Source of the DNA: Neoechinorhynchus agilis
Lineage: Eukaryota; Animalia; Acanthocephala
DNA length: 57,940 nt
Reading direction: 5' to 3'
NCBI GenBank assembly: GCA_051530055.1
Contig: JBMGUZ010000014.1
Span: forward strand, 1 to 57,940
Part shown: positions 2 to 50,940 of the stretch, one piece after another
Numbering within the stretch: position 1 is the first letter of the stretch
How the letters are laid out: the number at the start of each line of letters is the position of its first letter
The notes under the pieces: model-generated
Databases searched by the model: none
Told to the model about the DNA's origin: nothing
Seen by the model: the letters and a program-made list of their open reading frames with translations, nothing else
Made by a program: the position numbers and the translations under genes

Positions 2-3000
2 ATTCCTCAACACAACGACATCGTAAATCAACAGCATTTTCAACAGCAAATCGAAATTGACTACAACGTTGACCCTGACGTACCTCAAAACAATCGTCAA
101 CACCTTGAAATCAATGAAGCGCATTATAAGTCAACAAATGGAAAGAATTTACAGTCAAATGAAGGTTTGGCCAGTACTGAACAACTGCAAGCACCGAACA
201 CAAACTGCGACGCAATCAATACAAACTTTCCATCGTCGAAATCCATCATACTAAACTACGTCGCGCGCTCAGATTCTCCCTTGGAATGTGGCTTATGCTT
301 TGCTTGGTTTGTTGGTAACTCGAGAGTAAAATCGCTCGAACAACATTTGATCTCTTCCCATGGAATCGACGCAATTACTTGGCGATGTCCTCTCTGCTTA
401 AAATACGAACACAAAGAAACGCGAAGTATCGGAACGCACGTCAGATCTTGTTCAAAGAAATTTCCGGCTAGATATCGTGAGTTAAGCAGCAATTCCTCTC
501 CTTCAGCCGCTTCAAAAGATTTTCGATCTGTCTCCGTTGGACGCTTTGCGTACTGCGGAATTGATGAAGATTTTGTATCGTGCGATGTCTGTGGTCTGAA
601 GATCTACGGTTTGGGTCTTTGCAAGGCAATGGTCGACCACCTGAAGAAGGATCATAAATCGTCGGTTGTGGAAATAAAATGCGGCTTGTGCGATAACAGA
701 TATACTGACGTCGTGTCCGCTCGCAGTCACGTCAACCAATGCAGAAAAAAAGATGCCCTGAATAAAATGAACATAAATGCCGAGAAAATTACATCAAAAA
801 ATGCTAGCTCAAGAGATGCGACGTCAGAAGATACTACCTCAAAAGGTATTACCTCAGAAGCTACTACCTCAAAAGATTCTACCTCAAAAGATTCTACCTC
901 AAAAGATTCTACCTCAAAAGATACTACCTCAGTTTTACCTCGGACCGCAGAGGGTACAATCAAAGGTGACGACGCTGGCTGTATCAGCCGGATAATTCTC
1001 GAATCTGAATCAAGTTGCGGAAGTGTTCAGGCTTTTAATGCCGAAAACTACAACCCTTCGAGCCTCTTGTTTAATGATTATGGATCGGGAGTCGGCGATG
1101 TCTCGTTTCATAGTGGAAATGTTGCAACTTCGCAATCTTATCCGCCCCATGACATAAAAGTATGTACCGCGTTGCAGCAAACATCTTTTGCGGAAGAAGA
1201 AGTTGAATGCCAATCTGCATCTACCTTTACCGTCTCGGCGTGCTACGAATTCGTCCTTAATGTACTGGAGGAACGTGCTTTGCACCCACGGTATCAAAAC
1301 TTTCTTCGTGGTCTAGCAGCAGAACTACGAGACCATCCTGAACCAGTAACACAAGAGCTTATGGACTCTATTGCCGGGAAATACGAAGCTTACCTAAGAT
1401 GCGGCCGAACGCTAATGACCAATCATTCCAGATCAACGAAAGCAAAGAATATGGGCCTTCGGATTGTTAAACTGAAAGTCGGACCTCAAATGGTACTAAA
1501 CGCAATTGCCTTCCATGTTTTCGACAATCCCGCGCAGGCGCATATTGTACTCCGGCGGATCTTGGACAACATAGGACAAAACACTGAGTACTATTCTGCT
1601 ATCATGACGCGCGTAGACGATGCCAATGTTAGTTTACAGTGTATCGTAGACAACCTTAAGAAGGGTCGGATATTGTCTCCTATATTCTGCATGTGGGCAG
1701 CGGCCTCAACTTTTAATTGCGATTTTCAAATTTTGACGCCATATGCCACGAAAATGAATGTTATTCGATCACGAACCGTCGCATCGAAGTCTTTTAATGT
1801 CTGGATGGAGGACTCGAAGCAATTCCCGTGCGTTAGGTGCAGGTTCTTGAATATTTCTCAACGACGTGCCATGAACAAGAAAAGAAATAGAGCTCTATAT
1901 TTCGCCAACACTACTCAACTTGCGAAGGAAACATTTGAAAATGTCTCATTGAACAGCTGCAAAATCCCCGCAAAAATGATAACCGACCATTTTGCCGGAC
2001 TGTTTCAAAGCATTGATACTTGCAAACAAAGTGAAGTCAACAGAAATAATGAACTCGCCAAATCAAACTGGAAGTGGATTGATGCAGAGGAAATCAAGAC
2101 CGCCCAAAGGAACATAAAGACATCCAGCGCACTTGGACCAGACAAGATAAGTTGTCGGCAGGTAATGGCTTTTGACCCTCACGTTGTTGGTCTCGTCTTG
2201 ATTTACAATATGGCCATGGAGGTAGGTGGACCACCTAAGGCATGGAAAGAAAATCGAACAATATTGATACCAAAAAATGGTGCGGACGAGAAGGCACTAA
2301 AGTGTGTTAACGGTTGGCGGCCTATTACGATTTCATCTGTGCTCATGAGAATCATGCACAGAATCTTGCTTGCACGTCTCCGGCAGGAGATAGACCTTGA
2401 TGTCAGTCAAACGTGCTTTGATGTGGAAGCCTGCCACTCAAACTTACTTACGATTCGAGCGCTACTTCGGCAATCCAGAGCTGTTAAAAGATCAATTGCC
2501 ATGGCCATCCTTGATGTAAAGTCAGCGTTTGACACCATCTCACACGATTCACTAAGAAATGCGTTATGCCGAACAATTAAGGATGCAGCGACAAAAGAGT
2601 ATATATTAAATGCATTTTCGAGCAGCCACACTAAAATTTATACTTCTACTGGTCCTCCCTCGGAGCCCATACACTTCAACCGAGGCGTGAAGCAAGGAGA
2701 TCCACTTTCGCCATTTCTCTTCGCCCTATGCATTGACGAAGTTCTGCGAAAGGTCCGAGAAAGTAGAGCAGGTTACGTCGAGGGCGCCACGTATATTCCT
2801 GCAATTGTATACGCGGACGACATATTGTTAATCGGAAACGATCAAGAAGAGCTGCAGTCTATGATTAACGTTGTCTCAGAGGAATTAAAGCACAAAGGTC
2901 TGCTTCTGTCGCCAAAAAAATGTCGAACCTACATTCAGAACTATCAGCGTGGGAAGTTGTCTGAGGAGGTAACGGCTTCTGTCAAATTAGAAGGCACTTT

Positions 3001-4213
3001 GTTGGAATGCATAACCGAAGGAGACACAATTCAATACCTTGGAGGTACACCATGGGCAAAATGTTCAAAAGAGTCCATATGTCAAATGATTGACGAACTT
3101 GCGTTTCGCACAAAACAGGCCCAATTAAACCCAACGCAAGCGGTCCACTTATTAAATGACTATGGAATTCCTCGTGTAATCGCGCAGCTGCAAAATGCCC
3201 ATGACCTTTCGACAACGTGCTTAAGTCAAATCGACCAGTATTGGCGCAAGACGATTAAAAAGATTCTATTCTTGCCAGCTTACATAAACAATGGAGCCTT
3301 TCATCTTCCTCTCAATCAAGGCGGTATGGGATTTAGAGGAATCGAACACGAGGTTTTGAGCAGCAGGAAAAAGGCTCACTCAACGGTTACTGGAAAGTAC
3401 CCCGAACTAAACCACCACATCAAAGGAGGCGAGAATATTTCGACATATGAGAGTTCGGCTGAGCGAGGTGCTAACTTGAAGAAGGCCTGGGAAGGGGCCG
3501 CGACTCAATCTCTAGGTGCTCAACACTTCTGGGATGGAAACTTCGATCGCCGCCTGATCAGTTTCAGGTATCGTCAAAGCCGCCACAAGGAATACGTCGA
3601 AAACGTAAAGATGCGATACCAGCTTCTAGAGGTTGGTACAGTGCTTTCCAAGCTGGACAAAAATAGAACGAGGAAATGCCGACATTGTTGCGCAGCAGAT
3701 GAATCGTGCCTTCACGTGCTTAATGAATGCAACTACATCACGAGGGCAATGATATCACGTCATGATGCAGTGCAAAAGCGTCTCGTTTGGGCGATTAAAA
3801 GACGAAATCCTGCTTTTGAAGTCATGACCGAAAACAGAATACATGATCCTGGGGGAAATCTACACAAACCCGACCTCATCATTGTTGATCGGGAAAATGG
3901 CAGGATAACAATTGCCGACATCGCAATCTACTACGAAACGAACATCAATCGTGGAGAGGAAATAACAAAACAAAAAGAAGAAAAGTACCTCCCCATTTGC
4001 GATGTAGTAGCTGCGCAATACAACGTAGAGGAACGCAACGTAGAAACGCTAGGCATTGCAGTCGGCTCAAGAGGTAGCTTTTCAAAAACATTATTAAAAA
4101 GACTGCGTTCACTCAATTTAAACACTGGGTGCGCAATAAATATGTGCCGCACCGCTGCCGAAAAGAGTCTTCAAGTGTATCATACATTTATGGGACGAAA
4201 GCAAACCAAGTAA
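2..4213 (+). CDS. R2-like polyprotein (>=1403 aa): 4 zinc fingers, OTU-like domain, RT, CCHC knuckle, restriction-like endonuclease
   Basis: The track ORF 167-4213 frame is also open from base 2, so the true start is upstream. Motifs: CGLC..H....H, CPLC..H...C, CDVC..H....H, CGLC..H...C; WRPITISS; LDVKSAFD; QGDPLSP; YADD; YLG; CRHC..H....C; RHD; KPDLII..ADIAI; KEEKY. Confidence 0.95.
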   Translation: MPQHNDIVNQQHFQQQIEIDYNVDPDVPQNNRQHLEINEAHYKSTNGKNLQSNEGLASTEQLQAPNTNCDAINTNFPSSKSIILNYVARSDSPLECGLCFAWFVGNSRVKSLEQHLISSHGIDAITWRCPLCLKYEHKETRSIGTHVRSCSKKFPARYRELSSNSSPSAASKDFRSVSVGRFAYCGIDEDFVSCDVCGLKIYGLGLCKAMVDHLKKDHKSSVVEIKCGLCDNRYTDVVSARSHVNQCRKKDALNKMNINAEKITSKNASSRDATSEDTTSKGITSEATTSKDSTSKDSTSKDSTSKDTTSVLPRTAEGTIKGDDAGCISRIILESESSCGSVQAFNAENYNPSSLLFNDYGSGVGDVSFHSGNVATSQSYPPHDIKVCTALQQTSFAEEEVECQSASTFTVSACYEFVLNVLEERALHPRYQNFLRGLAAELRDHPEPVTQELMDSIAGKYEAYLRCGRTLMTNHSRSTKAKNMGLRIVKLKVGPQMVLNAIAFHVFDNPAQAHIVLRRILDNIGQNTEYYSAIMTRVDDANVSLQCIVDNLKKGRILSPIFCMWAAASTFNCDFQILTPYATKMNVIRSRTVASKSFNVWMEDSKQFPCVRCRFLNISQRRAMNKKRNRALYFANTTQLAKETFENVSLNSCKIPAKMITDHFAGLFQSIDTCKQSEVNRNNELAKSNWKWIDAEEIKTAQRNIKTSSALGPDKISCRQVMAFDPHVVGLVLIYNMAMEVGGPPKAWKENRTILIPKNGADEKALKCVNGWRPITISSVLMRIMHRILLARLRQEIDLDVSQTCFDVEACHSNLLTIRALLRQSRAVKRSIAMAILDVKSAFDTISHDSLRNALCRTIKDAATKEYILNAFSSSHTKIYTSTGPPSEPIHFNRGVKQGDPLSPFLFALCIDEVLRKVRESRAGYVEGATYIPAIVYADDILLIGNDQEELQSMINVVSEELKHKGLLLSPKKCRTYIQNYQRGKLSEEVTASVKLEGTLLECITEGDTIQYLGGTPWAKCSKESICQMIDELAFRTKQAQLNPTQAVHLLNDYGIPRVIAQLQNAHDLSTTCLSQIDQYWRKTIKKILFLPAYINNGAFHLPLNQGGMGFRGIEHEVLSSRKKAHSTVTGKYPELNHHIKGGENISTYESSAERGANLKKAWEGAATQSLGAQHFWDGNFDRRLISFRYRQSRHKEYVENVKMRYQLLEVGTVLSKLDKNRTRKCRHCCAADESCLHVLNECNYITRAMISRHDAVQKRLVWAIKRRNPAFEVMTENRIHDPGGNLHKPDLIIVDRENGRITIADIAIYYETNINRGEEITKQKEEKYLPICDVVAAQYNVEERNVETLGIAVGSRGSFSKTLLKRLRSLNLNTGCAINMCRTAAEKSLQVYHTFMGRKQTK
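800..930 (+). repeat. 15-bp coding minisatellite (ACCTCAAAAGATTCT; TSKDS repeats) in the Ser/Thr-rich linker
   Basis: Tandem acctcaaaagattct units visible; protein reads TSKDSTSKDSTSKDTTS. Confidence 0.9.
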
Positions 4214-4548: not shown

Positions 4549-6055
4549 TAAATAGTAATGTAAATTCAGTCAATTTTAACGATTTCAATAGCTTCAGTTT
4601 TATTGGCATTCTCGAAGGAGAAAGTAAATGGCTTGCATCGTTTATGAGAGATCTAGGCAAAAGCGGCGTTAACGCAGAGTACGAAAAAAAATGGGCGGAG
4701 GCAAAAACACAGGCAAACGGATATCAGGCCTTTACCAACGGATTCGCAGACCCAAATGCTATCATTCAGATACAGACAGGGCCATCACAGGCAATACACG
4801 GAATTGATAAAAATGCGAGCTGACTTAGAGGTTGGTGCCGTTATGGCAAGGATCTCAAACAATAGGACAAAAGCCTGTCGCCATTGCGCCCATCAAACAG
4901 AACGTGCTTGCACGTAATTAATCAGTGTGACTTCTCGACGGAAGCAATGATTAAAAGACACGACGACGTCGTGAGTCTTTATAGGCGCACTAAATGCAGT
5001 TGAAGCAAAATCCGCCAAAAGAGATTCAATCCGAGGCATCAGTTACACTGTCGATAGAAAAAATCACATTATGGACGACGGCGGCAACTTACACAAGTCC
5101 GACCTCATTGTGAGGACAAACATAAATGATCACAGATAGTGGTGATGTGGCGGTCTACTACGAGACCTCATTGGAACAAGCAGCAGTTATGGCGAAGATC
5201 ATATTTTGTTAGTCAGTAAGTGATAAGGCCGACTTTAACAAGCTCGATGTTGCGGTTACAGAATTGCGAAGTATCGGATTGTCCTTCAATCCAGCAAAAT
5301 GCGTTTCGTACAGCCACAGATTTTGTCAAGGCTCCAAGTCTCGGCCTCAAAATTATAAAGCTAAAGAAAAATTCAACAATGGTACTGGTGACCGCCGCCT
5401 TTCTCGTCCTCGAGAAACCTAGACAAAGGAGGAGAGTAAAAGACCGCAGCTTGGACCCTGTTTCACTTCATATAGTAAAAATGATTCTTGATGCTAATCT
5501 AACAGTAAATGAGACACTGGATGCTACTAAAAATTACAACGAACTATCAGTTCACTTCATCTTGAGGGCCGCAGCGACTGCCTATCAATGCGATTTTGTC
5601 GGGCAAACTCCAAGCGACGGTGTTCCTCTTCGAATTCGATCTCGCACAGCCACAAATTCATCATTTGGATTAATGAGTCAGGTACTTATCCCTGCGAAAG
5701 TTCTCGAGACCTCAAATCAAAGCAGTGACACGACCCTATTAAAAGACGTTAACCTTCTAAACGACTATGCAATTCCATCCTTAATGGTTAAGCTCGAAGC
5801 CTCATGCGACATCGCCCCGCTAATCTCAGACGTAAAGACGAGCAATGGAGGTGCAGACTAAAGAAGATTCTTAAACTTACAAGGAACTTAGGGGAAGGAG
5901 CTTTCGATGAGTGTGAGCTGAGTCTAATCTCGCCAAGTAATGCTTTAGTGTGGTAGATGAATAAAGCGAAAATAACTTCCATTCAAGGTACAGATGCTTT
6001 CTGGAGACGGAGAGCGATATCCTCCATCGATCAGAAGGCTCCATTGATAGGGAAA
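4549..6055 (+). pseudogene. Scrambled R2-like cassette (family D), copy 1
   Basis: Fragments in the order linker-CCHC-RLE, RT motifs 5-7, OTU-like, thumb (LLNDYAIP), HPRY-type helix; frameshifted. Confidence 0.85.
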
Positions 6056-25941: not shown

Positions 25942-26021
25942 TAAAGAAACAATGATGGTAGTGGTATTTCACCGGCGCGGCTTCCCACCTGTTCTACGCC
26001 CATCATGTTTCTTCACAGACT

Positions 26022-26059
<38 letters not shown>

Positions 26060-26176
26060 GTTACTCTCCTAGCCCGTTCCCTTTTGGCTGTGGTTTCGCT
26101 AGGCTGCAGACAGGGACAGTAGGAATCTCAATAATCCAGTCATGCACGTCACTAATTAGATGACGAGGCATTTGGC
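25942..26176 (-). rRNA. 28S: 28S rRNA fragment starting at the R2 site
   Basis: Reverse complement of GCCAAATGCC...TTTCTTTA; same breakpoint as 4548. Confidence 0.95.
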
Positions 26177-26178
26177 AA

Positions 26179-27256
26179 AGACGCACTTTATTTGGATTTC
26201 TCTCTCTCGCGAGTTTAGTACTCTTGATCCTTTTCTTAAGATTTTTTTGAAGTTGCTTCTTCCTCTTTTTTTAAGTTGTATTTAATACTTGTGATTTTAA
26301 AGATGATTCGTCCTTGGGCTTCTGCTCATGAAAACGTGGAACGTCTTAAGGGTTTTTTCCCCTGCCGTGGAAGCCATGTTTAGTGCGGTCCCTGTAGATA
26401 GACCAATGGTGTTGAGCCGTTTTGTTATTCCTTTTGAATATGTGCCTCTTGAGCCGACGGCGTGGCCCATTGTCGATACGCGGTGAGGAGCAAATCCCAG
26501 CTTTATGGCTACCTCTTCTTTAATTGCCTTATATTTGTCCTCTTTCGCATTCATTATTTCCTCTGCCCGTTCATTGTTAGTTTCATAGTAGACGGCAAAG
26601 TCCGTTATGATTGCTTTTTGCGCGTTTCTATCGACCAATATGGCATCCGGTTTGTACAGCTGCCCTCCAGGATCGTGGATACGATTCTCGGTTAGTACTT
26701 CATACCGAGAACCCCATCTCTTGTTTAGAGCCCATATGAATCGATTTTGTATGGTATCACGGCGCTCTATCATCATGCCCGTACTGTAGGGGCAGCTGTT
26801 TAGCACATGCATTTGTGTTTCAGCTTCGGCTGAACAATGTCGACATTTCCTCGTCCAGTCGTGGTCGATTGTTGCCAAATTCGCGCCTACTTCGAGCAAT
26901 TGGAATCGCATCTTTACCAATTCCGTGTAATGTTTGTTGATGTCTTGTCTATATCGGAATGATAAAGATTTTCGTTCGAAGTTTCCATTTGTGAACGATT
27001 CAATTCCTTGCGATTGCGTCTTCGCTTTCGTCCACTTATTGATGGTGCTCGAAATGTGCAGTGCCTTAGCGCGCGCGGTATCAGTAATTTCTTCAGTCGA
27101 GCCAAGTCCTTCGAAATATTTTTGGACAGTTTTTTATATTCAGATAAAATTTCGAGTTCGGAGCAACGTTTCTTTGCGTTTATGTATATTTTTAGTCGCA
27201 TATCCATGACTGATTGTTTAATAGATTTGTATCCTAGACCACCTTTGTTCAGGGGC
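26179..27256 (-). mobile_element. 5'-truncated R2-like element, family E (thumb end, CCHC, RLE, 3' UTR)
   Basis: PLNKGGLGY; CRHC..H....C; KPDAIL..TDFAVYYE; KEDKY; 3' end AATAAAGTGCGTCT then TTGCCAAATG. Confidence 0.9.
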
Positions 27257-27418
27257 ATTATTATTATTATTTCACGCCTCATACAACATACACACAATCA
27301 ATCTCTTAATTCCTCTTTCTTGCTTGATCTAATATGTCTCGGGCCCAAGATGGCTGTGAGTTGTGGGACGATCTCTTAAATCCCCTCACAGCAGCCTCGA
27401 AAACCCTTCTTTTAATTC

Positions 27419-29761
27419 TTAAGTAATAATCCTTTTCTTGTCCTGATCCTGTAAAAAAGAGAATAACATGAGAAAATCACTTACCTCATTCCTGTTAAGT
27501 ATATTAGTTTGATTAATGGGTAGAAAACTAGATGGTTTATTGAAAAAGATTCTAAGAATTGAGGAGTTGTAATTAAAATATTTACAGCTAGAATAACAAT
27601 AAGAATAAAACCAAATTTTAGACAAAAAAAATCTTGTTAAAAAGGAAAAAAGGGGTTCCGTATCAATATTATTTTTAATAAGAATACTGCTAAGCTTATT
27701 CAGCATAGTAAGATAAAATGATAGTCTGTTTTCTGGGGGCCGGCCTCGTACGAAAAAGCATATTGAACCCCCTAGAAATATTTTTAACACTTTAGAAATA
27801 AAAGGTGGGGAAATTGATAACCTTTTGGCTCTTTTGATAAAAATATCTGTTTTTGTCAGAAGACTTTTAAAGGAAGAGTTTATAAAAATTCTGTGATTTT
27901 TACAGGGGAAATCAACACCTAAAATCTTGGAATGCGATCTAAAATAGATATTAGGGAAATTTAAATTAGAAGATAATTCATTAATTAGAAGCTTCCTCGA
28001 AGCCAAAGTTTTAGTCAGTGGAATAAAAAAAGTTTTGTTATTGTTTGTAACTAAATTGGCTTTCCTAAGTTCCGACGACAAAGATTGCATAAAATTGGCT
28101 ATATTATTCGTTAGAATAGAAGATGTTCTAGCTTTACAAAATAAGAATATATCATCCGCATAAACTAAAGGAAATATGGAAGATGATTTCTTTAAATTTT
28201 TGAAAATATATATAAGGGCAATTGAAAATAAGGTGGGCGAGAGTGGAGATCCTTGAGGAACACCATATCTAGAGAAAAAATTAGTGTGAGAAGGGTCCAC
28301 CTCATAGTAAAAGGACTTTGATTCCATAAGATAGTTGGTTTTGTAGATAAGATTAAGAGGAACTTTAAGATTAACTAAAGCCTCATAAAGAAAGCCACGA
28401 TCCAAGGCATCAAAAGCCTTATTAATATCCAGCTGAATGAGAAGTTTTTGTACATTAATAGCTTCATTCATAGAATTAAGAGAGGATAAAAGCGATGTGA
28501 TACCTTTACCTCTAATGAAGCCATGGAAAAAGTCGGGGATTAGCTTTCTACATACTAGAAAGTCATACAGTTTCCCGTTCACCGCTCTTTCTAAGCAAGA
28601 GACGATTGGGTTCTGTATGGAAATTACTCTGATGTGGGATGCGTTTAATATACGTCCTTTCGTTTTGGGAATAAAAATTTTCTTAACAATATTTATATTA
28701 AGTAGATCATTAAAATCAATTTTCGATAAACGAAATCTACTAAAAAAGATAGATTTTACCTTATCAGAAATAGAACTAAAAATTATGGGTGAAGTGCCAT
28801 TTATATTATACGCTTTAGAGGGGTTAGATTTACAGGCCTTCAGAAAAACTTCAACTTCAAAATTCCACGAAAAGGACTTTTTATTAAAGATGGGAAGTGG
28901 AGGAGAAGAACATGCACTAAGAGTATGTGCCATCAAAATAGACTCAATTACTGCGGGATAAGATATAGACCCTATCCAGTTAGATGCTTTTGCCTTCCAA
29001 CAGACCGGTCTTCTTTTCAAAATACAGGACCAAAAGTCTTTACCAAAGGACTTAAGAGAGATCAGCTTCTTTTTGTCCAACGAAACTTGATGATAAAACT
29101 TAGCTGTGTAAAATTTTTTCATAAATAAGTTTTTAAGGGGAGCGTTACCATACAAGTCAGCTATAACAGCATTTTTATAAAATATGTTGGCTTCATGACA
29201 AACAGGAGGTCGCTTGATCACAGACTTAGTAATTAAATTTTTATGTACAGAGGATAAAATGGCATTGTTAAAGTCAGATAACGAGGATGAAGTGGAAGAG
29301 TTCATAAAAGAAAGGAGATCATTATTAAATTTTGAAAAGCTTTGAGGATTAAAAACGAAAGTGTCCTTAAGAGCGATGCCATTAGATTTAAAAAGGATAA
29401 GGTCATGCCCTAACAATCTCTGTGACTGAAGTTGGGAAGCAGGATAAAATAAAATAGGAATTGACTTTTTAATAATTGCACCATCCAAGAAGGTATGTCT
29501 ATTAGATTTAACATTATGAAAAGAAGGAAATTTGGGGAGCAAAAAATTGTGTAACTTAAAAAAGGGCCTAAAAGCATTTAAAAAATTACTATTGAAGTCG
29601 CCTACGATAAAGTCAGGATTCCAGTAACGGAGGATATGCATAAAAGATTTAGTAAATATACCCACATGTCTGGGTTGAATATACAAGTTGCAAAGGATAA
29701 GAGTAGGAGAGAAAAGGGATGAGGTTCCATATAAGGGATTATTAAAAGAAATAATTTGCAT
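27419..29761 (-). CDS. LINE ORF2 (APE C-terminal part plus RT), 780 aa; N-terminus frameshifted
   Basis: APE and RT motifs as above; no RNase H motif seen. Confidence 0.85.
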   Translation of the reverse strand: MQIISFNNPLYGTSSLFSPTLILCNLYIQPRHVGIFTKSFMHILRYWNPDFIVGDFNSNFLNAFRPFFKLHNFLLPKFPSFHNVKSNRHTFLDGAIIKKSIPILFYPASQLQSQRLLGHDLILFKSNGIALKDTFVFNPQSFSKFNNDLLSFMNSSTSSSLSDFNNAILSSVHKNLITKSVIKRPPVCHEANIFYKNAVIADLYGNAPLKNLFMKKFYTAKFYHQVSLDKKKLISLKSFGKDFWSCILKRRPVCWKAKASNWIGSISYPAVIESILMAHTLSACSSPPLPIFNKKSFSWNFEVEVFLKACKSNPSKAYNINGTSPIIFSSISDKVKSIFFSRFRLSKIDFNDLLNINIVKKIFIPKTKGRILNASHIRVISIQNPIVSCLERAVNGKLYDFLVCRKLIPDFFHGFIRGKGITSLLSSLNSMNEAINVQKLLIQLDINKAFDALDRGFLYEALVNLKVPLNLIYKTNYLMESKSFYYEVDPSHTNFFSRYGVPQGSPLSPTLFSIALIYIFKNLKKSSSIFPLVYADDIFLFCKARTSSILTNNIANFMQSLSSELRKANLVTNNNKTFFIPLTKTLASRKLLINELSSNLNFPNIYFRSHSKILGVDFPCKNHRIFINSSFKSLLTKTDIFIKRAKRLSISPPFISKVLKIFLGGSICFFVRGRPPENRLSFYLTMLNKLSSILIKNNIDTEPLFSFLTRFFLSKIWFYSYCYSSCKYFNYNSSILRIFFNKPSSFLPINQTNILNRNEVSDFLMLFSFLQDQDKKRIIT

Positions 29762-29824
29762 TGCAAAAGAAATATTTTTAGTTTGAAATAAAATTTTAGA
29801 AGAGTGAGATTTAAGAATAAATGT

Positions 29825-30777
29825 TTAAAGTCCTCCAGAAAATCCAATGTGCTGATTGGTTGATGTGGAGCGAGGGAGAAGAACATGAGAATCATAATTT
29901 TCGAAGAGAAGCATTTTAGAAAAGCCGGTTTCTTGAAAACACAGCATGTTAACATAGTTATCAACTACACAAGGAGTAAGAAAATTAGGAAGCTGCTTCG
30001 ATGGTATGGAATCGTCAAAATATTTTTGCGCGAATTTGCAAGAACGTGCAAAGGCCGGATGATTCTTGCCACAGTTTGCACAGGTAGCAGCATCAGAATT
30101 GGAGCAAGATGATTTGTGATGAGGACCTGCACAAAAGATGCATCTGGAGGGGAAGACACAGTCAGATTCGTGGTGCCCCCATCTCGAACACCTCTGACAT
30201 ATCGTCAAATTATAATCATAGATAGAGTCCCTGTATCGGTCAAAAGTGACCCAGTATGAGAAAAACCCCTGCCGGAGTTAGCTAGACTCTCGGCGACATT
30301 GATAGTAGCTGAACATAGGATGGCGTAGGCTGAACTAGCGTTGGGTCTAAACAGATATTTGACCAGTTTTATACCTAACTCATCCTCAATTTTGCGAAAA
30401 TCAGTAGTATCCAAGTCTTGAGGAGGATTCCTCATTAGAAAGGTGACTCTACGAGATAGGTCAACAGATTGGATGCTTAACTCCCCTAGCATCTTAGAAA
30501 AGAGGTCTTTACCGGCCGCATCGAAAAAAATAAAAAGGATGTGAAATTTGGTCACAGAGAACCTCTTTATCAAAAAATTCATATGTTTCTCACGACCATT
30601 CGGCAGTAAATACTTCTCGAAGAAATAACGCGAGAAATAGGAGGGGGAGTTAGTGCCCATGGCTTCTTTGGGAATTTTGATAACGAAATCCTCTTTCCTA
30701 ACAGGACGCTTAAACTTTGATGCGTCGATAGAATGTTCCATCTGATCCCCTATGGAAACTTGTGCACAATCATTCAA
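29825..30777 (-). pseudogene. LINE ORF1 (gag-like), frameshifted at ~30206 and running into the APE N-terminus
   Basis: ORF 30205-30777 followed by ORF 29825-30208, which holds three zinc knuckles and then MLCFQET. Confidence 0.75.
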
Positions 30778-31104
30778 AACTTCACAATCACTCGGAGGGG
30801 GAGGGGGATAGTAGGAACAAACCTTAATCTAGACATGTCGGAAATAGGGTTTATCTGATCGTCTCACCGGCAACAAAATACATTTCTAGAGAATATATTT
30901 AGATTTCGGGCAACATTAGGCTTTAAACGGCAGAAATTAAAATACAGCTATGCTTGCATTCTCAGATGCAATCATTCAAAATAAATGGCATTTACACTAT
31001 TGTACAAAAAGGAACACGGTAGGCCAAAACAAATTTCATTTTTTTTTATTTTTTCACAACTGCGAGTATATGTCGATATATGAGGTAACAGGGTATATGA
31101 TTAG

Positions 31105-31240
31105 AACTATTGTTTAGGTCTTCATCCGCGCCAGTTTGTTGGTTATTAATAGACGCTCATCCACTGATGACAAACCCGACGAGGTTCGAAACGCTTTTAG
31201 TAAAAAATATTTACCCGGTAAAAAACCCAAACAATAATCC
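31105..31240 (+). ncRNA. Hammerhead-like core inside an imperfect inverted repeat (possible Penelope-like terminal repeat)
   Basis: CTGATGA (31164-31170), AACC/GGTT stem, CGAAAC; flanks TATTGTTTAGGT / ACCCAAACAATA. Stems I and III could not be completed. Confidence 0.4.
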
Positions 31241-31297
31241 TTCGGCGAGTATAAATATATTTGCTTTGTTCTGTTTCAAAATATATTTTTATATCTC

Positions 31298-31744
31298 TTA
31301 AAAGGAAACTGCATTACTTTTTGTCATATGTCGTCGTTTAGCTTTCCGAAAGCTATTTATAGTTGCCCTTGTATATTCGTCGCAATTTCGATCAAAGTTT
31401 AGCCTTATTTCTGGAATGATTCGTGTTTGGATATCGGAAAGTCCCTTTTTGATAATATCGTCAATGGATGTAGATCGCAGAGTTTCCGCCGAATTAATAA
31501 CCGTCTTTTTATTATTAAACGGTTCCAATGAATGTACCATATTTGTCGGTGAAGATGGAAGACGAAAATTGAATTTGTGCTGGCGATTGCTAGAAATGAC
31601 ATGATCAAACCGAATTTCTGAAATGTGATCGGCGCTTAAATTTTCTAGTTCCTGGTCCGCGGTCTCCTCTTCTAGCTCGTAAATACGATGAGCATTATTC
31701 CGAGGGTCGTATCGAATCATTCTGTATAAAGCGGAAATTTTCAC
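31298..31744 (-). CDS. Hypothetical 148-aa ORF, no recognisable family
   Basis: Open frame of normal composition in AT-rich DNA; GTG start; no motif recognised. Confidence 0.3.
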   Translation of the reverse strand: MKISALYRMIRYDPRNNAHRIYELEEETADQELENLSADHISEIRFDHVISSNRQHKFNFRLPSSPTNMVHSLEPFNNKKTVINSAETLRSTSIDDIIKKGLSDIQTRIIPEIRLNFDRNCDEYTRATINSFRKAKRRHMTKSNAVSF

Positions 31745-33599
31745 TTGTACTTAAAAATAAAGACTGTAGTGAATCTTGCAATGAGAATTGGAAATAGTAA
31801 AGCAAAAGCTGCCAATAGAAATCAGAAAATGCCAAATGGTCAGTTGATTGAGTGAACGTGGGTGGAGAGACGAAAGGATGCCACAGAGAAATTTTCTTAG
31901 AAGTTTAGAAGACAGCGTGGTTTAAAAATAAAGTAAAAAGGAGTTTAAATTAATACATATAAGAAAAAGTTGATAAGTAGAAATGGAGCAAAAATAAAGA
32001 AAATTTACAGAGAAAGTGGCATAAGATACCGCAAAGTCCGACAAAGATATTGATACCATGAAAATGCTAATAAAGCGAATAAGTAACATTATGCGGAGCG
32101 CTTAGGTTTTTCATCAGTACAATGAAGAAGCAAAAACATGTGAGCAAAAATCTGTTGTTTTTGGACATTTTTTTAATTTCTTTTCGACTCTGCAAAGCAA
32201 CCCTCGGTATTGATCATTTCGTTCTCTTCAAATCCCATTACGCGCAGTTAACAGGTATCGATTACACGTAATTATATTCCCATCTTCCCTTCTCTGCTTT
32301 TCGCAAGAACAAAAGACGACGTTCCCTTCTAATTTAAATCTTTCAAGTAATTTTCCTTTCATTCTACCGGAAATTTGTGAATAACGTTGCCTTCGTGTGA
32401 CATATAAAGTCAAGTGGCATCTTAAATCAATTTTTAAATCATAAATTTAAGCCCTTTAAAAGCGCAGAACACGTTGCAGATTGCAAAGGTTTCTATTATT
32501 TGCTATCTTGCGTCTATTTTTACTTACATCGTCGAAAGTGTTCAGAGAACTGTAGGGAAAGCATTGAAAATCAATAAGTGTTGCTTTACAGGCGTAAAGT
32601 CGTTTTAGGGTACAATAATTTTCACTGATTTTACAAAAGATTTGCAAAGACGGCAATTTGAGCTTACAAAAAAGTGCAGTGCTTACTTTCCCTTGTGTTG
32701 AGCGTTTTACAATAACGTCAGAAACGAAATCTCACCATTGTCATTTTCGCTCTCTCCTGACTATTTACTGTATGTGTTTATTTTGAATGTTCAATGCTGC
32801 ATTTCGTGAGTCGTTGTATTTGCTTGAATCAGTCAGAATGAATACATCATCCGCGTGACGCACCCAGCGTGAATCTCGCCTTCAACAACGCATTGTACGA
32901 GACCGTACGTCGCACGCATCAGAGAAACAACAATAGGGCACCGCACTCGTTCATCATCCAATATAACGAAAATGTTCGTCGCGAGCACCAGAGAAACTTC
33001 AAAAACGTAACAACTGCGTTCATCAACGTAGAAACGAGACCAAACGTCACAAGCGGTAGAGAAAAGCTACAACAACGCAGCGATTGCGTTCATAAACAAC
33101 GGAGGGGACGATACCCGATGTTGCGAGCATCAGAAAGGCAACAATGTAGCGAGCGCGTACAAAGGCACAGAGGGGACGAGACCCAACGTCGCGCGTGTAA
33201 GAGAAACAACGACAGCGCGAAGCTTGCATTCATCAACGGAAGAACGAGACCGTACGTCGCAAGCGGCAGAGAAAAGAAGCTACAACAACGCAGTGATCGC
33301 CGTTCATAAAAAACGCGGGGATCGATACTGGATGCAGCGAGCATGATGATTTATTTTTTATTTCGCGCTCTGTATGTACATACAATTCGCTTGTTCCAAT
33401 TCTTTATTATCATCATCATCATCATCATCGTTGTATGTTGCTTCCTTCCCGATTTCAATTTGGCGATCTCTGAGCCTCCAGATCAGGCCCGAAGTAACTT
33501 AGCAGCCAAAAACAAAAAACTTATTGAGGAGTACATAATATATATACGGAATATATATGGTTACACAACAAAAATATTCAATAACAAATAAATGGCTCT

Positions 33600-35050
33600 T
33601 AATAGTATATTTAATTTTATACATATATCTTAATTGTATATCCTAGTATTTGATTGTCGCCTCGTTTCCCATGATTTAATCGTTCCAATATGTCACAGTA
33701 CACCCATTTATCCCTCATTGAACATCCTCTCAAGTCATCGAAAGCCAGAAGCCTCTTCAAAATCGCTAGCGGGTTACATATCATAAAACCAAGCCAATGA
33801 ATCCTTTTTACGATGGATGCGACTTCAGATGAAAATTGATCCCTAGCACTAGAACATTTGGTAACTTTCATCAGTTGTGTGCGAGAATCTTCTAAAAATT
33901 TAACAAACATCAGCTTACGAGCCGAGTTTGAATTCGTCAGAGGGACCAGTGTTGTCTTCCTCCTATTAGTGCTGAGATTAGCATTCCTTAGACAAACAGC
34001 CAGTTCGCATAGCACTGAATCCACTAAATTGCATAAAAATTCTCTTTTCTTATGATAAATAAAAAAGAAAATATCATCTGCATAAAATAAAACTTTCACA
34101 CTGGATAACGTTTTCAGTTTATTGTGAATACCGATCATACAAATTAAAAATAAAGTAAGGGACAACGGCGAACCCGGCGGTACCCCTAAGTTCGAATAAA
34201 AATGGCCTTTTAAAGGATCAACCTCCAAAAAATACGCCTCCGATTCCATAAAGAACTGAATACTACATAGAAGCTTATTAGGCAGCTTCAAGTCGAAAAA
34301 TGTCTTATAGATAAAATTTCTGCTAAAAGCATTGAACGCCTTATTTACGTCCACTTGTAGTAAAATTTTGTTAACTCTCAGCACCGATTTCTGGAGGTCC
34401 CATAACTCATTTATTAACGTCCCCACTCCCTTCTCAATCGCAAAACCATGAAGCATTTAGGGATAAGATTTTTTTCTACTTAGAATCCCCAACAATTCGT
34501 CATTTATTACTTTCTCCATGAGAGAAATGATAGGATTTTGAATCGATATGAACCTGACATCACTCGGGGCTTTATCTTTTCTTCGACTTTACTTATGATG
34601 ACCTTCCTCTATACATTGACCTTGCATAAGTCATCAACGGTCAGACGTTCCGGCATACGGTATAGTATCTTAATTTTCACATCCTCACAAATCAAGTCAA
34701 AAATCTTAGGATAAACTGACAGTCAATTGGAAGCTAATTTCTAATTCCCCAATCGCATCGAGGGGAATAGTTATCCAAAGGAATAAAAGAAAGGTTCACG
34801 GATAAATCAAAACGATGATTCGATAAAATTTGTTCCATCACTGTGGGATATGAGACTGATGCTTTTAATTTTCCGAACCGTTCTCTTTCTATTTAGTACT
34901 GCACTCCAAAAATTCTTCGAAAAGGCTCTAGACTCGCCTAATCTTAATCTGCCCCTTCTGATACTTTCGTAAAACACTTCTTTATAAAAACGAATCATTT
35001 ACAAATCCTGCAAATCCGCAATTATCGCACAGCGATAAAGTAAACGTGCC
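33600..35050 (-). pseudogene. Degenerate RT region of a second LINE related to 27419-29761
   Basis: VDVNKAFN, GVPPGSPLS, FYADDIFF; upstream FSKNFWSAVL and ISIQNPII match FGKDFWSCIL and ISIQNPIV of the other LINE. Confidence 0.85.
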
Positions 35051-35280
35051 ATTTTCTACGGTCTATTGCGCCTTTCATGCGCAGAAGTCACTAAATGACT
35101 AGAAGTCGCTGCAGAAATCATCCTATTCAGCTCTTCCATCCTGAGTATGAAATATTTACATATGTCGGCTCGCATGCAGTCATTAAAATAAACTAACCTC
35201 ACCGCGTCATTCCATACAACTCTTGATTTAATATTCATCAATCCAAACTGGAATATAATCATGCCCCATCCTAGGCTGCT

Positions 35281-35519
35281 ACCGTAGCCCCAAAAGAGTG
35301 TAAAAACCGTACAATTCAACCACAATACACTTCTTTTATAATATACACCACCCTGCTATAGCCGCCGTCCAAATCTACGTAATAAAACAACCTTAATAGG
35401 ACACCCGAGACCACTTGCACCCCATAAACAACACCTAAAATAGAACCAAAATTATAACTCGCATTCAAATTTGTCGGGGTTGGTAAATTTAACAAACTAA
35501 GCTTAACTATCTTAACCAC
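35281..35519 (-). pseudogene. cob: Cytochrome b 5' fragment (mitochondrial origin)
   Basis: LPTPTNLNASYNFGSILG...Q..SG; TGA read as Trp gives GWIVRFLHSFGAT, including the heme-ligating His. Confidence 0.95.
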
Positions 35520-35571
35520 CCATCAAAAATCTTAGACCCCCAAAGCCCATATTTAAATAAACTTTTTGATG
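35520..35571 (-). tRNA. trnP: mt tRNA-Pro (UGG), T-armless
   Basis: Acceptor CATCAAA/TTTGATG; D stem GTTT/AAAT; anticodon arm TGGGC-TTTGGGG-GTCTA. Confidence 0.85.
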
Positions 35572-35625
35572 TAAACAACAGATATTTGAAACTTAAATCC
35601 AACTCATCCCATCTGACATTTGTTT
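35572..35625 (-). tRNA. trnL2: mt tRNA-Leu2 (UAA), T-armless
   Basis: Acceptor AAACAA/TTGTTT; anticodon arm TTGGA-TTTAAGT-TTCAA. Confidence 0.85.
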
Positions 35626-35636
35626 AATTAACACAT

Positions 35637-36114
35637 CTAAGGCCATAAAACAAATAAAACTACCATAACAAGCCCACTTGCAAATAGACAAAAAAACATG
35701 ATTCACCGGTACCACATCATAATAACCCCATAAAACCCCCTGATAATAAGATTCAAACCCCTTATCATAACCCTAGAATCTAAACCGCTAAACACCCGAA
35801 TAAACACCCAAACAACTAAGTCTATAAACACGTAGTATAAGCCCCCTAATATGCTTAATAAAGAATTCCTATTCACCGTAGCCCCGAACACTGCAACTGC
35901 AACTATAAACACCTAAAAAATAATAATTCTGGTGGGGTTAACAACACCCGACCACGCATTTAAAAATCACCTCTCTACCACTAACCAACCTGAAACAGAT
36001 ATCACAGCCAAAACATACATTATACAATACAAACCAGACACCCCGGCCACACCTGCGCTGGGGCTGATACCAACCCTTATCGCACCCTTAACCACTTTTA
36101 AAGAATAAATAAGA
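35637..36114 (-). pseudogene. nad5: Probable nad5 3' fragment with one frameshift near 35915
   Basis: Hydrophobic frame in the mitochondrial code starting YSLKVV and ending TAG at 35637; the nad5 call rests mainly on its position before trnL2-trnP-cob. Confidence 0.6.
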
Positions 36115-36175
36115 CTAAAAGAAGTCATAGTTACGTCCACCGTTTACCCGCGCTTAAATTAATTTCTTCACTTTA

Positions 36176-49426: not shown

Positions 49427-50940
49427 TAAATAGTAATGTAATTTCAGTCAATTTTAACGATTTCAATAGCTTCAGTTTTATTGGCATTCTCGAAGGAGAA
49501 AGTGGCTTGCATCGTTTATGAGAGATCTAGGCAAAAGCGGCGTTAACGCAGAGTACGAAAAAAAATGGCGGAGGCAAAAACACAGGCAAACGGATATCAG
49601 GCCTTTACCAACGGATTCGCAGACCCAAAAATGTTATCATTCAGATACAGACAGGGCCATCACAGGCAATACACGGAATTGATAAAAATGCGAGCTGAAC
49701 TTCTAGAGGTTGGTGCCGTTATGGCAAGGATCTCAAACAATAGGACAAAAGCCTGTCGCCATTGCGCCCATCAAACAGAAACGTGCTTGCACGTAATTAA
49801 TCAGTGTGACTTCTCGACGGAAGCAATGATTAAAAGACACGACGACGTCGTGAAAGTCTTTATAGGCGCACTAAATGCAGTTGAAGCAAAATCCGCCAAA
49901 AGAGATTCAATCCGAGGCATCAGTTACACCGTCGATAGAAAAAATCACATTATGGACGACGGCGGCAACTTACACAAGTCCGACCTCATTGTGAGGACAA
50001 ACATAAATGATCGGGTTTATATAGTAGATGTGGCGGTCTACTATGAGACCTCATTGGAACGGGCAGCAGTTATGGCGAAGATGATATTTTGTTAGTCAGT
50101 AAGGATAAGGCCGGACTTCAGAATAAGCTCGATGTTGCGGTTACAGAATTGCGAAGCATCGGATTGTCCTTCAATCCAGCAAAATGCGTTTCGTACAGCC
50201 ACAGATTTTGTCAAGGCTTCAAGTCTCGGCCTCAAAATTATAAAGCTAAAGAAAAATTCAACAATGGTACTGGTGACCGCCGCCTTTCTCGTCCTCGAGA
50301 AACCTACACAATGGAGGAGAGTAAAGGACCGCAGCTTGGACCCTGTTTCACTTCATATAGTAAAAATGATTCTTGATGCAAATCTCACATTAAATGACAC
50401 ACTGGATGCTACTAAAAATTACAACGAACTATCAGTTCACTTCATCTTGAGGGCCGCAGCGACTGCCTATCAATGCAATTTTGTCGGGCAAACTCCAAGC
50501 GACGATGTTCCTCTTCGAATTCGATCTCGCACAGCCACGAATTCATCGTTTGGATTAATGAGTCAGGTACTTATCCCTGCGAAAGTTCTCGAGGCCTCAA
50601 ATCAAAGCAGTCACACGACCCTATTAAAAGACGTTAACCTTCTAAACGACTATGCAATTCCATCCTTAATGGTTAAGCTCGAAGCCTCATGCGACATCGT
50701 CCCGCTAATCTCAGACGTAAAGACGAGCAATGGAGGTGCAGACTAAAGAAGATTCTTAAACTTACAAGGAACTTAGGCGAAGGAGCTTTCGATGAGTGTG
50801 AGCTGAGTCTAATCTCTCCAAGCAATGCTTTAGTGTGGTAGATGAATAAAGCAAAAATAACTTCCATTCAAGGTACAGATGCTTTCTGGAGACGGAGAGC
50901 GATATCCTCCATCGATCAGAAGGCTCCATTGATAGGGAAA
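49427..50940 (+). pseudogene. Scrambled R2-like cassette (family D), copy 3
   Basis: ORFs 49565-50095 (CCHC/RLE), 50089-50376 (RT 5-7) and 50132-50746 (OTU-like, thumb). Confidence 0.88.

Follow-up and report, generated by a model that had tools for sequence, protein, structure and literature searches.

A mitochondrial segment joined to an R2 site in 28S rDNA of Neoechinorhynchus agilis, within a 9.9-kb composite that may stem from one R2-initiated integration

In the assembled genome of the acanthocephalan Neoechinorhynchus agilis a piece of mitochondrial (mt) DNA lies in nuclear sequence directly against the upstream half of a 28S ribosomal RNA gene that is broken at the target site of the retrotransposon R2. 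The stretch that we analysed (the window) comprises positions 1 to 57,940 of contig JBMGUZ010000014.1 (assembly GCA_051530055.1), and the mt piece, a nuclear mitochondrial DNA segment (NUMT) of 842 nt, occupies 36122-35281 on its minus strand. It is the 5' module of a 9.9-kb composite bracketed by the upstream and downstream halves of the 28S target (28S-up, ending at 36123, and 28S-down, starting at 26176). In the direction of 28S the order is 28S-up, the mt piece, a block that holds parts of two other retrotransposons called X and Y here (the X-Y block), a 5'-truncated R2 and 28S-down, and all identifiable modules, namely 28S, the mt genes, the reverse transcriptase (RT) of X, the open reading frames (ORFs) of Y and R2, point the same way. 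In our judgment the chances are about even that this composite arose in one R2-initiated integration, extended by template switching and/or by end-joining that trapped the mt fragment. The assembly is a MaSuRCA hybrid of Illumina and Oxford Nanopore Technologies (ONT)/HiFi reads from a pool of about 50 worms with Hi-C scaffolding (PMC12690905); the 102 contigs searched here (C1, C2 and so on below) total 46.2 Mb, the largest being 16.4 Mb long.

The mt segment is 96.9% identical by BLAST to C5:2206-3047 of the same assembly and consists, in the sense of 28S, of the 3' end of nad5, trnL(UAA), trnP(UGG) and the 5' end of cob. The cytochrome b model PF00033 of Pfam matches 35489-35283 when TGA is read as Trp, and a TGG>TAG change found in the window copy only puts a premature stop into nad5 at 35914. 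Both tRNA genes are short (55 nt for trnL and 52 nt for trnP) and lie unprocessed inside the segment, as the same pair does in C5. Positions 1 to ~7400 of C5 are a continuous, strongly G+T-skewed mt block (~7.4 kb) with intact frames for nad4 (412 amino acids), nad5 (532), cob (365) and nad1 (296) under the invertebrate mitochondrial code (code 5), and because these frames are intact the block was taken as a proxy for the real mitogenome. Its order nad4-nad5-trnL2-trnP-cob-nad1 is what we take to be the acanthocephalan order. A separate mitogenome contig was not found in the assembly, where searches with COX1 and cob led to NUMT-like places and the C5 block only. C5 itself is a 135.7-kb contig that opens with the mt sequence (atp6-nad3-...-nad4-nad5-L2-P-cob-nad1, frames intact), and the block is either a misjoined mitogenome or a very recent large NUMT.

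Is the segment truly nuclear, and how old is it? Comparison with the host mitogenome, which an earlier sequence-only reading of this DNA had proposed as a way to date the piece, was made with the C5 proxy and gave 26 differences; when the older NUMT at C2:16.32 Mb (87%) is used as the outgroup, the window lineage accounts for 12 of these and the mt lineage for 11. Since changes lie on both lineages, the NUMT is not a chimera put together from present-day mt reads. The proportions of synonymous and non-synonymous changes (5/12 versus 5/11) were uninformative for dating. Short reads of three runs from the assembly's own sample were mapped at a likeness of at least 99%, and in the whole-genome shotgun (WGS) run the NUMT-specific letters stand at ~20-25x, which is single-copy depth, next to ~40x for the adjacent X sequence, which is present at two loci. 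In an independent sample, contigs with the NUMT-specific letters of 35284-35340 and 35904-36012 have depths of 255 and 246; there the nuclear X part has 345, and short stretches common to mtDNA have ~5000-6000. The 842-nt piece is a genuine, somewhat aged NUMT. The older NUMT used as outgroup (C2:16319085-16327761, 87% identical to the window piece) carries nad5-L2-P-cob and part of cox1; it lies near the end of the 16.4-Mb contig, and a copy of the long interspersed nuclear element (LINE) Y is inserted into it between mt positions 49 and 72 of the segment. The end of the window's contig (54489-57940) is filled by a ~453-nt tandem repeat, which is 80-85% similar to a repeat at C2:16312000-16314742, near this older NUMT. 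Neither R2 nor rDNA was found beside the other NUMTs of the genome in their available flanks.

The letters quoted in the sequence-only reading are present in the window, and there 28S was thought to run to 36115, which would place the break within 1-2 nt of the R2 nicks. The alignment to the Rfam 28S model is of high confidence as far as ...GUAACUAUGAC and fails after it; in detail it is sound through ...GGUAAACGGUGGACGUAACUAUGAC and breaks down beyond. The 8 letters TCTTTTAG, earlier given to 28S, are identical in the mt copy, which reads ...TTGTGTTG TCTTTTAG TCTTATT where the window reads ...ACTATGACT TCTTTTAG TCTTATT. Because of this identity 28S ends at 36123 with GTAACTATGACT, whose last letters are GACT; the BLAST match to the mt copy reaches 36122, and a paralogue of the 28S flank (C2:3462-6668, 99.5%) also diverges at 36123, where it enters a different 5'-truncated R2. 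Measured against the conserved GACTCTCTTAAGG/TAGCC of the Rfam consensus (first-strand nick AAGG/TAGCC, the slash marking the nick), the 28S break is 9 nt upstream of the canonical first-strand nick, and 7 nt separate it from the second-strand nick that A-clade R2 is reported to make (PMC12180492), which lies downstream of it; an alternative parse with a 1-nt deletion puts it 4-9 nt from the nick. The claimed distance of 1-2 nt thus falls. The direct switch from 28S into nad5-trnL2-trnP-cob in the same sense holds for the genes and their orientation, with the switch at 36123/36122 and not at 36115, and the fusion at the R2 site holds in that the break lies inside the zone of this genome's R2 5' junctions, its base precision having been overstated.

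Reads clipped at 36122 in the three read sets go on with the same letters as the C5 copy (the reverse complement of ...GGGTCTTTTTTGTTTATTTTGTGTTG; agreement 1.0), and only ~37 of their letters align, as expected of true mt reads, since these differ from the NUMT from 36081 onwards. The junctions 36123/36122 and 35281/35280 both lack microhomology and filler; microhomology-mediated joining is without support at both mt junctions, and a parse based on TCTT costs an extra 1-nt deletion. At the other end the mt match stops at 35281 after ...GGGGCTACGGT, where the window continues with AGCAGCC... and the mt copy with GATGTTT..., so the 3' end of the segment had been placed correctly. The chance that a NUMT end meets an R2 half-site is ~5e-4 (~77 candidate upstream half-sites x 25 nt x ~12 NUMT ends / 46 Mb), so low that the two are unlikely to be neighbours by accident.

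R2 copies are numerous in the window, where a full-length one has an ORF of 1348 amino acids (167-4213) that is similar to solved R2 proteins (E=1e-81). Four downstream half-sites, (TA)GCCAAATGCCTCGTCATC, are present, each right behind an R2 3' end and one of them at 26176 on the minus strand, and R2 copies other than that of the composite join 28S-down at TAGCC or GCC. At least 40 dispersed upstream-28S copies lie on all large contigs (by read depth, ~25-30 of them are at least 99% alike), and nearly all end at GAC(T) and pass into R2 of several families. A genome-wide survey of sequences joined to the upstream half-site, also proposed before, was carried as far as classing ~30 of these other copies: the GAC(T) endpoint recurs, in that full-length R2 5' ends of several families start there, and truncated R2s are joined after GACT, GTAACT, GGACGTA, GGAC or similar, with a loss of 8 to ~25 nt of 28S. 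A few upstream copies run into non-R2 DNA. In three of them (L022, C1:712176-715376; L029, C1:339671-342872; L034, C3:2783983-2787152) 10-20 nt of 28S are lost, and the DNA behind the half-site has no similarity to R2, mt sequence, X, Y or the window; they are possible further captures of foreign DNA at R2 5' junctions. The L022 joint is also present in one contig of the independent sample. Behind each short 28S-down stub lies the same block (4674-5675 on the plus strand, 25799-24807 on the minus strand and 49574-50557 on the plus strand), which contains R2 protein fragments in the non-collinear order 1108-1268, 884-929, 425-545 and has a further copy in C4 that is 96-97% identical to each. 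This block could be an old product of template switching or rearrangement that was amplified later.

The modules between the two half-sites are listed in Table 1. The X-Y block begins in the middle of X, crosses unique DNA and has its end precisely at the (TAA)n tail with which Y closes. At the corresponding C2 locus 614 nt or more of X, collinear with other copies of the element, precede the point at which the window copy begins, and the DNA behind the Y tail is unrelated. Because X continues upstream in C2, the window copy starts inside X, and the idea that 35280 is the end of a full X element is ruled out by the extension of the family over at least 614 nt in C2 and in other copies. An end at a LINE tail combined with a start inside X is the signature of an RNA template that terminated at a LINE 3' end. 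Y belongs to a young, very active family whose copies are 97-99% identical and all end at the Y tail point, and both the window and the C2 copy lack ~470 nt of Y that are present in another Y copy (L066). No target-site duplication is evident around Y in C2, where the Y boundary is mapped only roughly.

At 27250-27270 the (TAA)n tail of Y abuts an R2 whose truncation point is at residue ~1047, and of all joints in the composite this is the clearest candidate for a template switch. The R2 piece (27257-26321) aligns to residues 1047-1344 of the full-length R2 protein of the window at 53%, and tblastn of the window revealed no upstream R2 sequence 5' of Y. In C4 a copy of this R2 family extends beyond the truncation point on the upstream side, and between window and C4 the identity is 98.9% for R2, 97.1% for the shared flank and 95.1% for 28S-down (Fisher p=3e-4). 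As the R2 piece is more similar to C4 than its flank is, it is a later, separate insertion, and its inheritance from a longer R2 common to C4 is ruled out by this significant difference. Another R2 copy (L016) is ruled out as its ancestor, being of a different family without a nucleotide match. The R2 3' untranslated region (UTR) meets the GCCAAATGCCTCGTCATC of 28S-down at 26176, 2 nt from the canonical AAGG/TAGCC, and ~8.9 kb of foreign sequence separate the truncated R2 from 28S-up. The join of the Y tail to the truncated R2 and the boundaries of the block argue for RNA templates for the X-Y and R2 modules.

Table 1. Modules of the composite and neighbouring rDNA features in the window
Feature	Position	Strand	Basis
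28S-up half, Rfam large-subunit (LSU) model ~665 to ~2268, ends ...GGACGTAACTATGACT	36123..37875	-	Rfam
NUMT part 1: last 161 nad5 codons and stop codon	35637..36122	-	alignment to C5
NUMT part 2: trnL(taa) 35625-35571, trnP(tgg) 35571-35520	35520..35625	-	ARAGORN, mitochondrial mode
NUMT part 3: first ~80 cob codons	35281..35519	-	PF00033 and C5 alignment
X-Y block, 99.4% copy of C2:312450 to ~319705	27258..35280	-	sequence comparison
Non-LTR (non-long-terminal-repeat) element X, RT ORF	34456-33617	-	inside X-Y block
Young LINE Y, (TAA)n tail	30859-27258	-	end of X-Y block
5'-truncated R2, residues ~1047-1344 and 3' UTR	26177..27257	-	tblastn against window R2 ORF
28S-down half from GCCAAATGCCTCGTCATC..., ~230 nt, then repeated R2-fragment block	25950..26176	-	half-site pattern
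28S 3' part	44978-43910	-	Rfam
18S	39740-37872	-	Rfam
28S model 665-1888	37909-36567	-	Rfam
28S model 1907 onward	36548 to ~36120	-	Rfam

A single R2-initiated integration could have built this arrangement as follows: R2 protein would have nicked a 28S copy, and target-primed reverse transcription of R2 RNA would have made the joint between the R2 3' end and 28S-down. After ~1.08 kb the growing cDNA would have moved to the (TAA)n 3' end of a long read-through RNA from a chromosome-2-like locus, which comprised LINE Y with the 4.4 kb before it and served as template as far as the middle of X. The mt fragment would have been added by a template jump onto an unprocessed mt or NUMT-derived RNA, or by end-joining of an mtDNA fragment, and the end of the composite would have been joined to an upstream 28S end trimmed by 9 nt. 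The anatomy, the homologies, the module boundaries, the nuclear depth of the NUMT letters and the repeated use of the GACT endpoint are observed; that there was one event, which reverse transcriptase acted in it and of which kind the mt template was, RNA or DNA, are matters of inference. The sense orientation of the mt piece favours RNA; by DNA capture it would be a 1-in-2 chance. Capture of mtDNA by end-joining is favoured because the ends are internal, the tRNAs are unprocessed and mt RNA is not expected in the nucleus. The earlier argument that the unprocessed tRNAs favour mtDNA or a precursor RNA is a reasonable one, and either of the two may have been the template. The proposal of a NUMT created at a retrotransposon-made break gains from the composite anatomy, the R2/28S-down joint and the recurrent GACT endpoint, and loses in its 1-2 nt precision and in the reads at 35281 (below). 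That R2 RT in the germ line jumped serially, from R2 RNA to LINE read-through RNA and on to an unprocessed mt precursor RNA, seems to us improbable; if it did, the NUMT was made by reverse transcription of mt RNA and not by mtDNA capture.

Several observations weigh against a single R2-initiated integration or parts of it. The X-Y block divergence predicts ~2.2 changes on the NUMT branch, which carries 12. Hence the NUMT predates the X-Y copy or it came from a divergent mt haplotype, and in such a haplotype some of the surplus may have built up while the sequence was still mitochondrial. The mt piece starts inside nad5 and ends inside cob, not at RNA 3' ends, and with its unprocessed tRNAs and the unexpectedness of mt RNA in the nucleus the case for an RNA origin of this module is weak. 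The region is a graveyard of rearranged R2/rDNA blocks in which rearrangement at the DNA level is common. Two pattern searches of the whole assembly found no uninserted R2 target or 28S of the species, so the exact target is not fixed by host 28S. All three runs have a V-shaped depth minimum at 35270-35300 (~5x versus ~24x; ~24, 19, 12.5, 5.3, 12.5 and 20 across 35281 in the WGS run), few of the mapped reads cross the mt/X junction, and among these mappings and the independent-sample contigs no listed record bridges either mt junction. The depth minimum is one reason to ask whether the hybrid assembler made one or both mt junctions from the worm pool. Further reasons are that the junction is found in no haplotig or second contig of the assembly, that the initial 7.4 kb of C5 are intact mtDNA and perhaps themselves a misjoin, and that the DNA was pooled and assembled with MaSuRCA and Hi-C scaffolding (PMC12690905). 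Such an artefact is nevertheless very improbable: the NUMT-specific letters have single-copy depth, and nuclear-like contig depth in the independent sample; the segment has a divergence of 3%, to which both lineages contributed, and contains a stop codon; and there is no depth dip towards 36122, where the mt-like loose ends, with their ~37 letters, fit true mt reads and not NUMT reads. Reads crossing 35281 are dropped and not clipped, while clipped reads are kept at 36122, and this behaviour speaks for a few wrong letters rather than a false join. We infer 2-3 wrong consensus letters at 35281-35283, which would take crossing reads below 99%; a hybrid assembler faced with abundant mt k-mers could have been their source. 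Contigs of the independent sample break here as well: one, at two-locus depth, spans 35206-35280 and adds 3 letters that do not match, and its successor begins at 35284. The 99% threshold is probably too strict for 35281, and the dip alone is not counted as a finding. A check by independent reads, which the sequence-only reading had called for, was thus favourable as to nuclear depth and the side towards 36122, and left the mt/X junction without read confirmation, since depth dips sharply there at this threshold.

Two other histories would place the mt piece at the R2 site by different routes. The double-strand break left by R2, or by an abortive R2 reaction, may have been sealed by nonhomologous end-joining (NHEJ) that trapped an mtDNA fragment together with LINE cDNA or a retrocopy, an account that we find rather unlikely; for the R2 part it overlaps with the single integration, and it differs only in the mode by which modules were added. 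The mt piece suits it, as 842 nt is an ordinary NUMT size and the ends are internal and unprocessed. Both mt junctions are blunt, which is equally compatible with template jumping, and breaks in yeast capture both mtDNA and retrotransposon cDNA (PMC11372161). End-joining would however require a free double-stranded cDNA of ~8 kb, would leave the co-orientation of all modules to a chance of ~1 in 4, and explains the exact join of the Y tail to the truncated R2 less simply than a template switch does. Alternatively, the modules may have come in separately: a Y read-through RNA (5' transduction) would have been inserted by the machinery of Y itself into a pre-existing R2 at residue ~1047, a large stretch upstream would have been deleted, and the NUMT would be unrelated; in a variant, DNA-level rearrangements in the R2/rDNA graveyard did the work. 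In both versions the position at the R2 site would be secondary. This is unlikely in our view. Y is young and very active, with copies 97-99% alike, the region is full of shuffled R2/28S blocks, the NUMT branch is longer than the X-Y block divergence, and L1 insertions with kilobase target deletions are known. Yet a deletion of more than 3 kb would have had to end within 1 nt of the usual 28S/R2 5' junction (~1 in 3000), neither an upstream R2 remnant nor a target-site duplication was seen, and with the chance of ~5e-4 for a NUMT end at an R2 half-site the coincidences are overall of the order of 1e-3.

The rDNA upstream of the composite has a peculiar structure of its own. The 18S sequence ends ...GAACCTGCGGAAGG(T)CA, essentially at its mature 3' end, and is fused there to 28S position ~665 (37860-37910, minus strand), so that the unit is without ITS1, 5.8S and ITS2 (ITS, internal transcribed spacer) and the first ~660 nt of 28S. 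The C2:3462-6668 paralogue is 99.5% identical over the compared 28S stretch, which extends to 37831 and does not reach the fusion. That the break lies at a mature rRNA end is a hint that the 18S/28S fusion may have had an RNA-mediated origin.

The composite unites kinds of event that are known separately: heterogeneity of R2 5' junctions, LINE template-switch chimeras and NUMTs captured at breaks. R2 proteins jump between templates in vitro and copy several in series (PMC12180492), and in human cells A-clade R2 proteins used for gene insertion (PRINT) give 5' junctions that lie mostly less than 100 bp from the nick, with a class of insertions fused to cellular-RNA cDNA, the 'extra template' class (PMC11371274). 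As in these systems, the N. agilis composite starts at the 28S R2 nick with a precise 3' junction, has its 5' junction within tens of bases upstream of the nick and carries unrelated, sense-oriented sequence 5' of the intended template, which in PRINT is cellular-RNA cDNA. It differs in being a natural germ-line insertion with three foreign modules and ~8.9 kb, one module of which is mitochondrial and does not start at an RNA 3' end, whereas the extra templates of PRINT are almost always U6. Ordinary 5'-truncated R2 insertions also have variable 5' junctions (PMC4370867, PMC3414825); they share with the composite the exact 3' junction and the loss of a few upstream 28S bases, and lack the 8.9 kb of foreign sequence between truncated R2 and 28S-up.

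Double template switches by LINEs are documented in the WEIRD / Mg-SINE / MGL chimeras of Magnaporthe (PMC2104539). Like the bipartite and tripartite chimeric retrocopies of the U6-L1 and WEIRD kinds, the composite consists of co-oriented, directly fused transcript copies with a 5'-truncated LINE at the 3' end, and it is by the 3' tail of Y that the upstream module is attached; the mt module has no RNA-type 3' end. In contrast to those chimeras, its 3' element is the site-specific R2, and there are no target-site duplications to prove one event, because R2 inserts with a small deletion of its target and leaves no duplication. NUMTs formed by NHEJ capture of mtDNA at double-strand breaks are described in yeast (PMC11372161) and primates (PMC2567098), and the N. 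agilis NUMT resembles them in its ordinary size, its blunt junctions and its place at a nuclease-cut site; unlike them, it would lie at a break made by a retrotransposon endonuclease, and it is fused in sense to two retrotranscribed modules. No description of a NUMT at an R2 site was found in the literature, in which no search aimed directly at this point was completed.

NUMTs are usually put down to end-joining at anonymous breaks, and hardly ever can the responsible nuclease be named; in the present case the break can be attributed to the site of a specific retrotransposon endonuclease. The arrangement suggests that a retrotransposon-made break, or the enzyme that copies at it, brought mt sequence into the nucleus. 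With its at least 40 upstream half-sites, this genome offers many independent R2 5' junctions for survey. Should serial jumping of R2 RT be the true history, the composite would document, from nature, both ~9 kb of R2 template jumping in vivo and the formation of an animal NUMT by way of RNA. If the composite did arise in one event, it would parallel in nature the 'extra template' junctions of R2 gene insertion in human cells, and R2 integrations would be able to carry large unrelated sequences, mt sequences included, into rDNA, which would bear on the safety profile of R2-based insertion tools and on the growth of rDNA graveyards.

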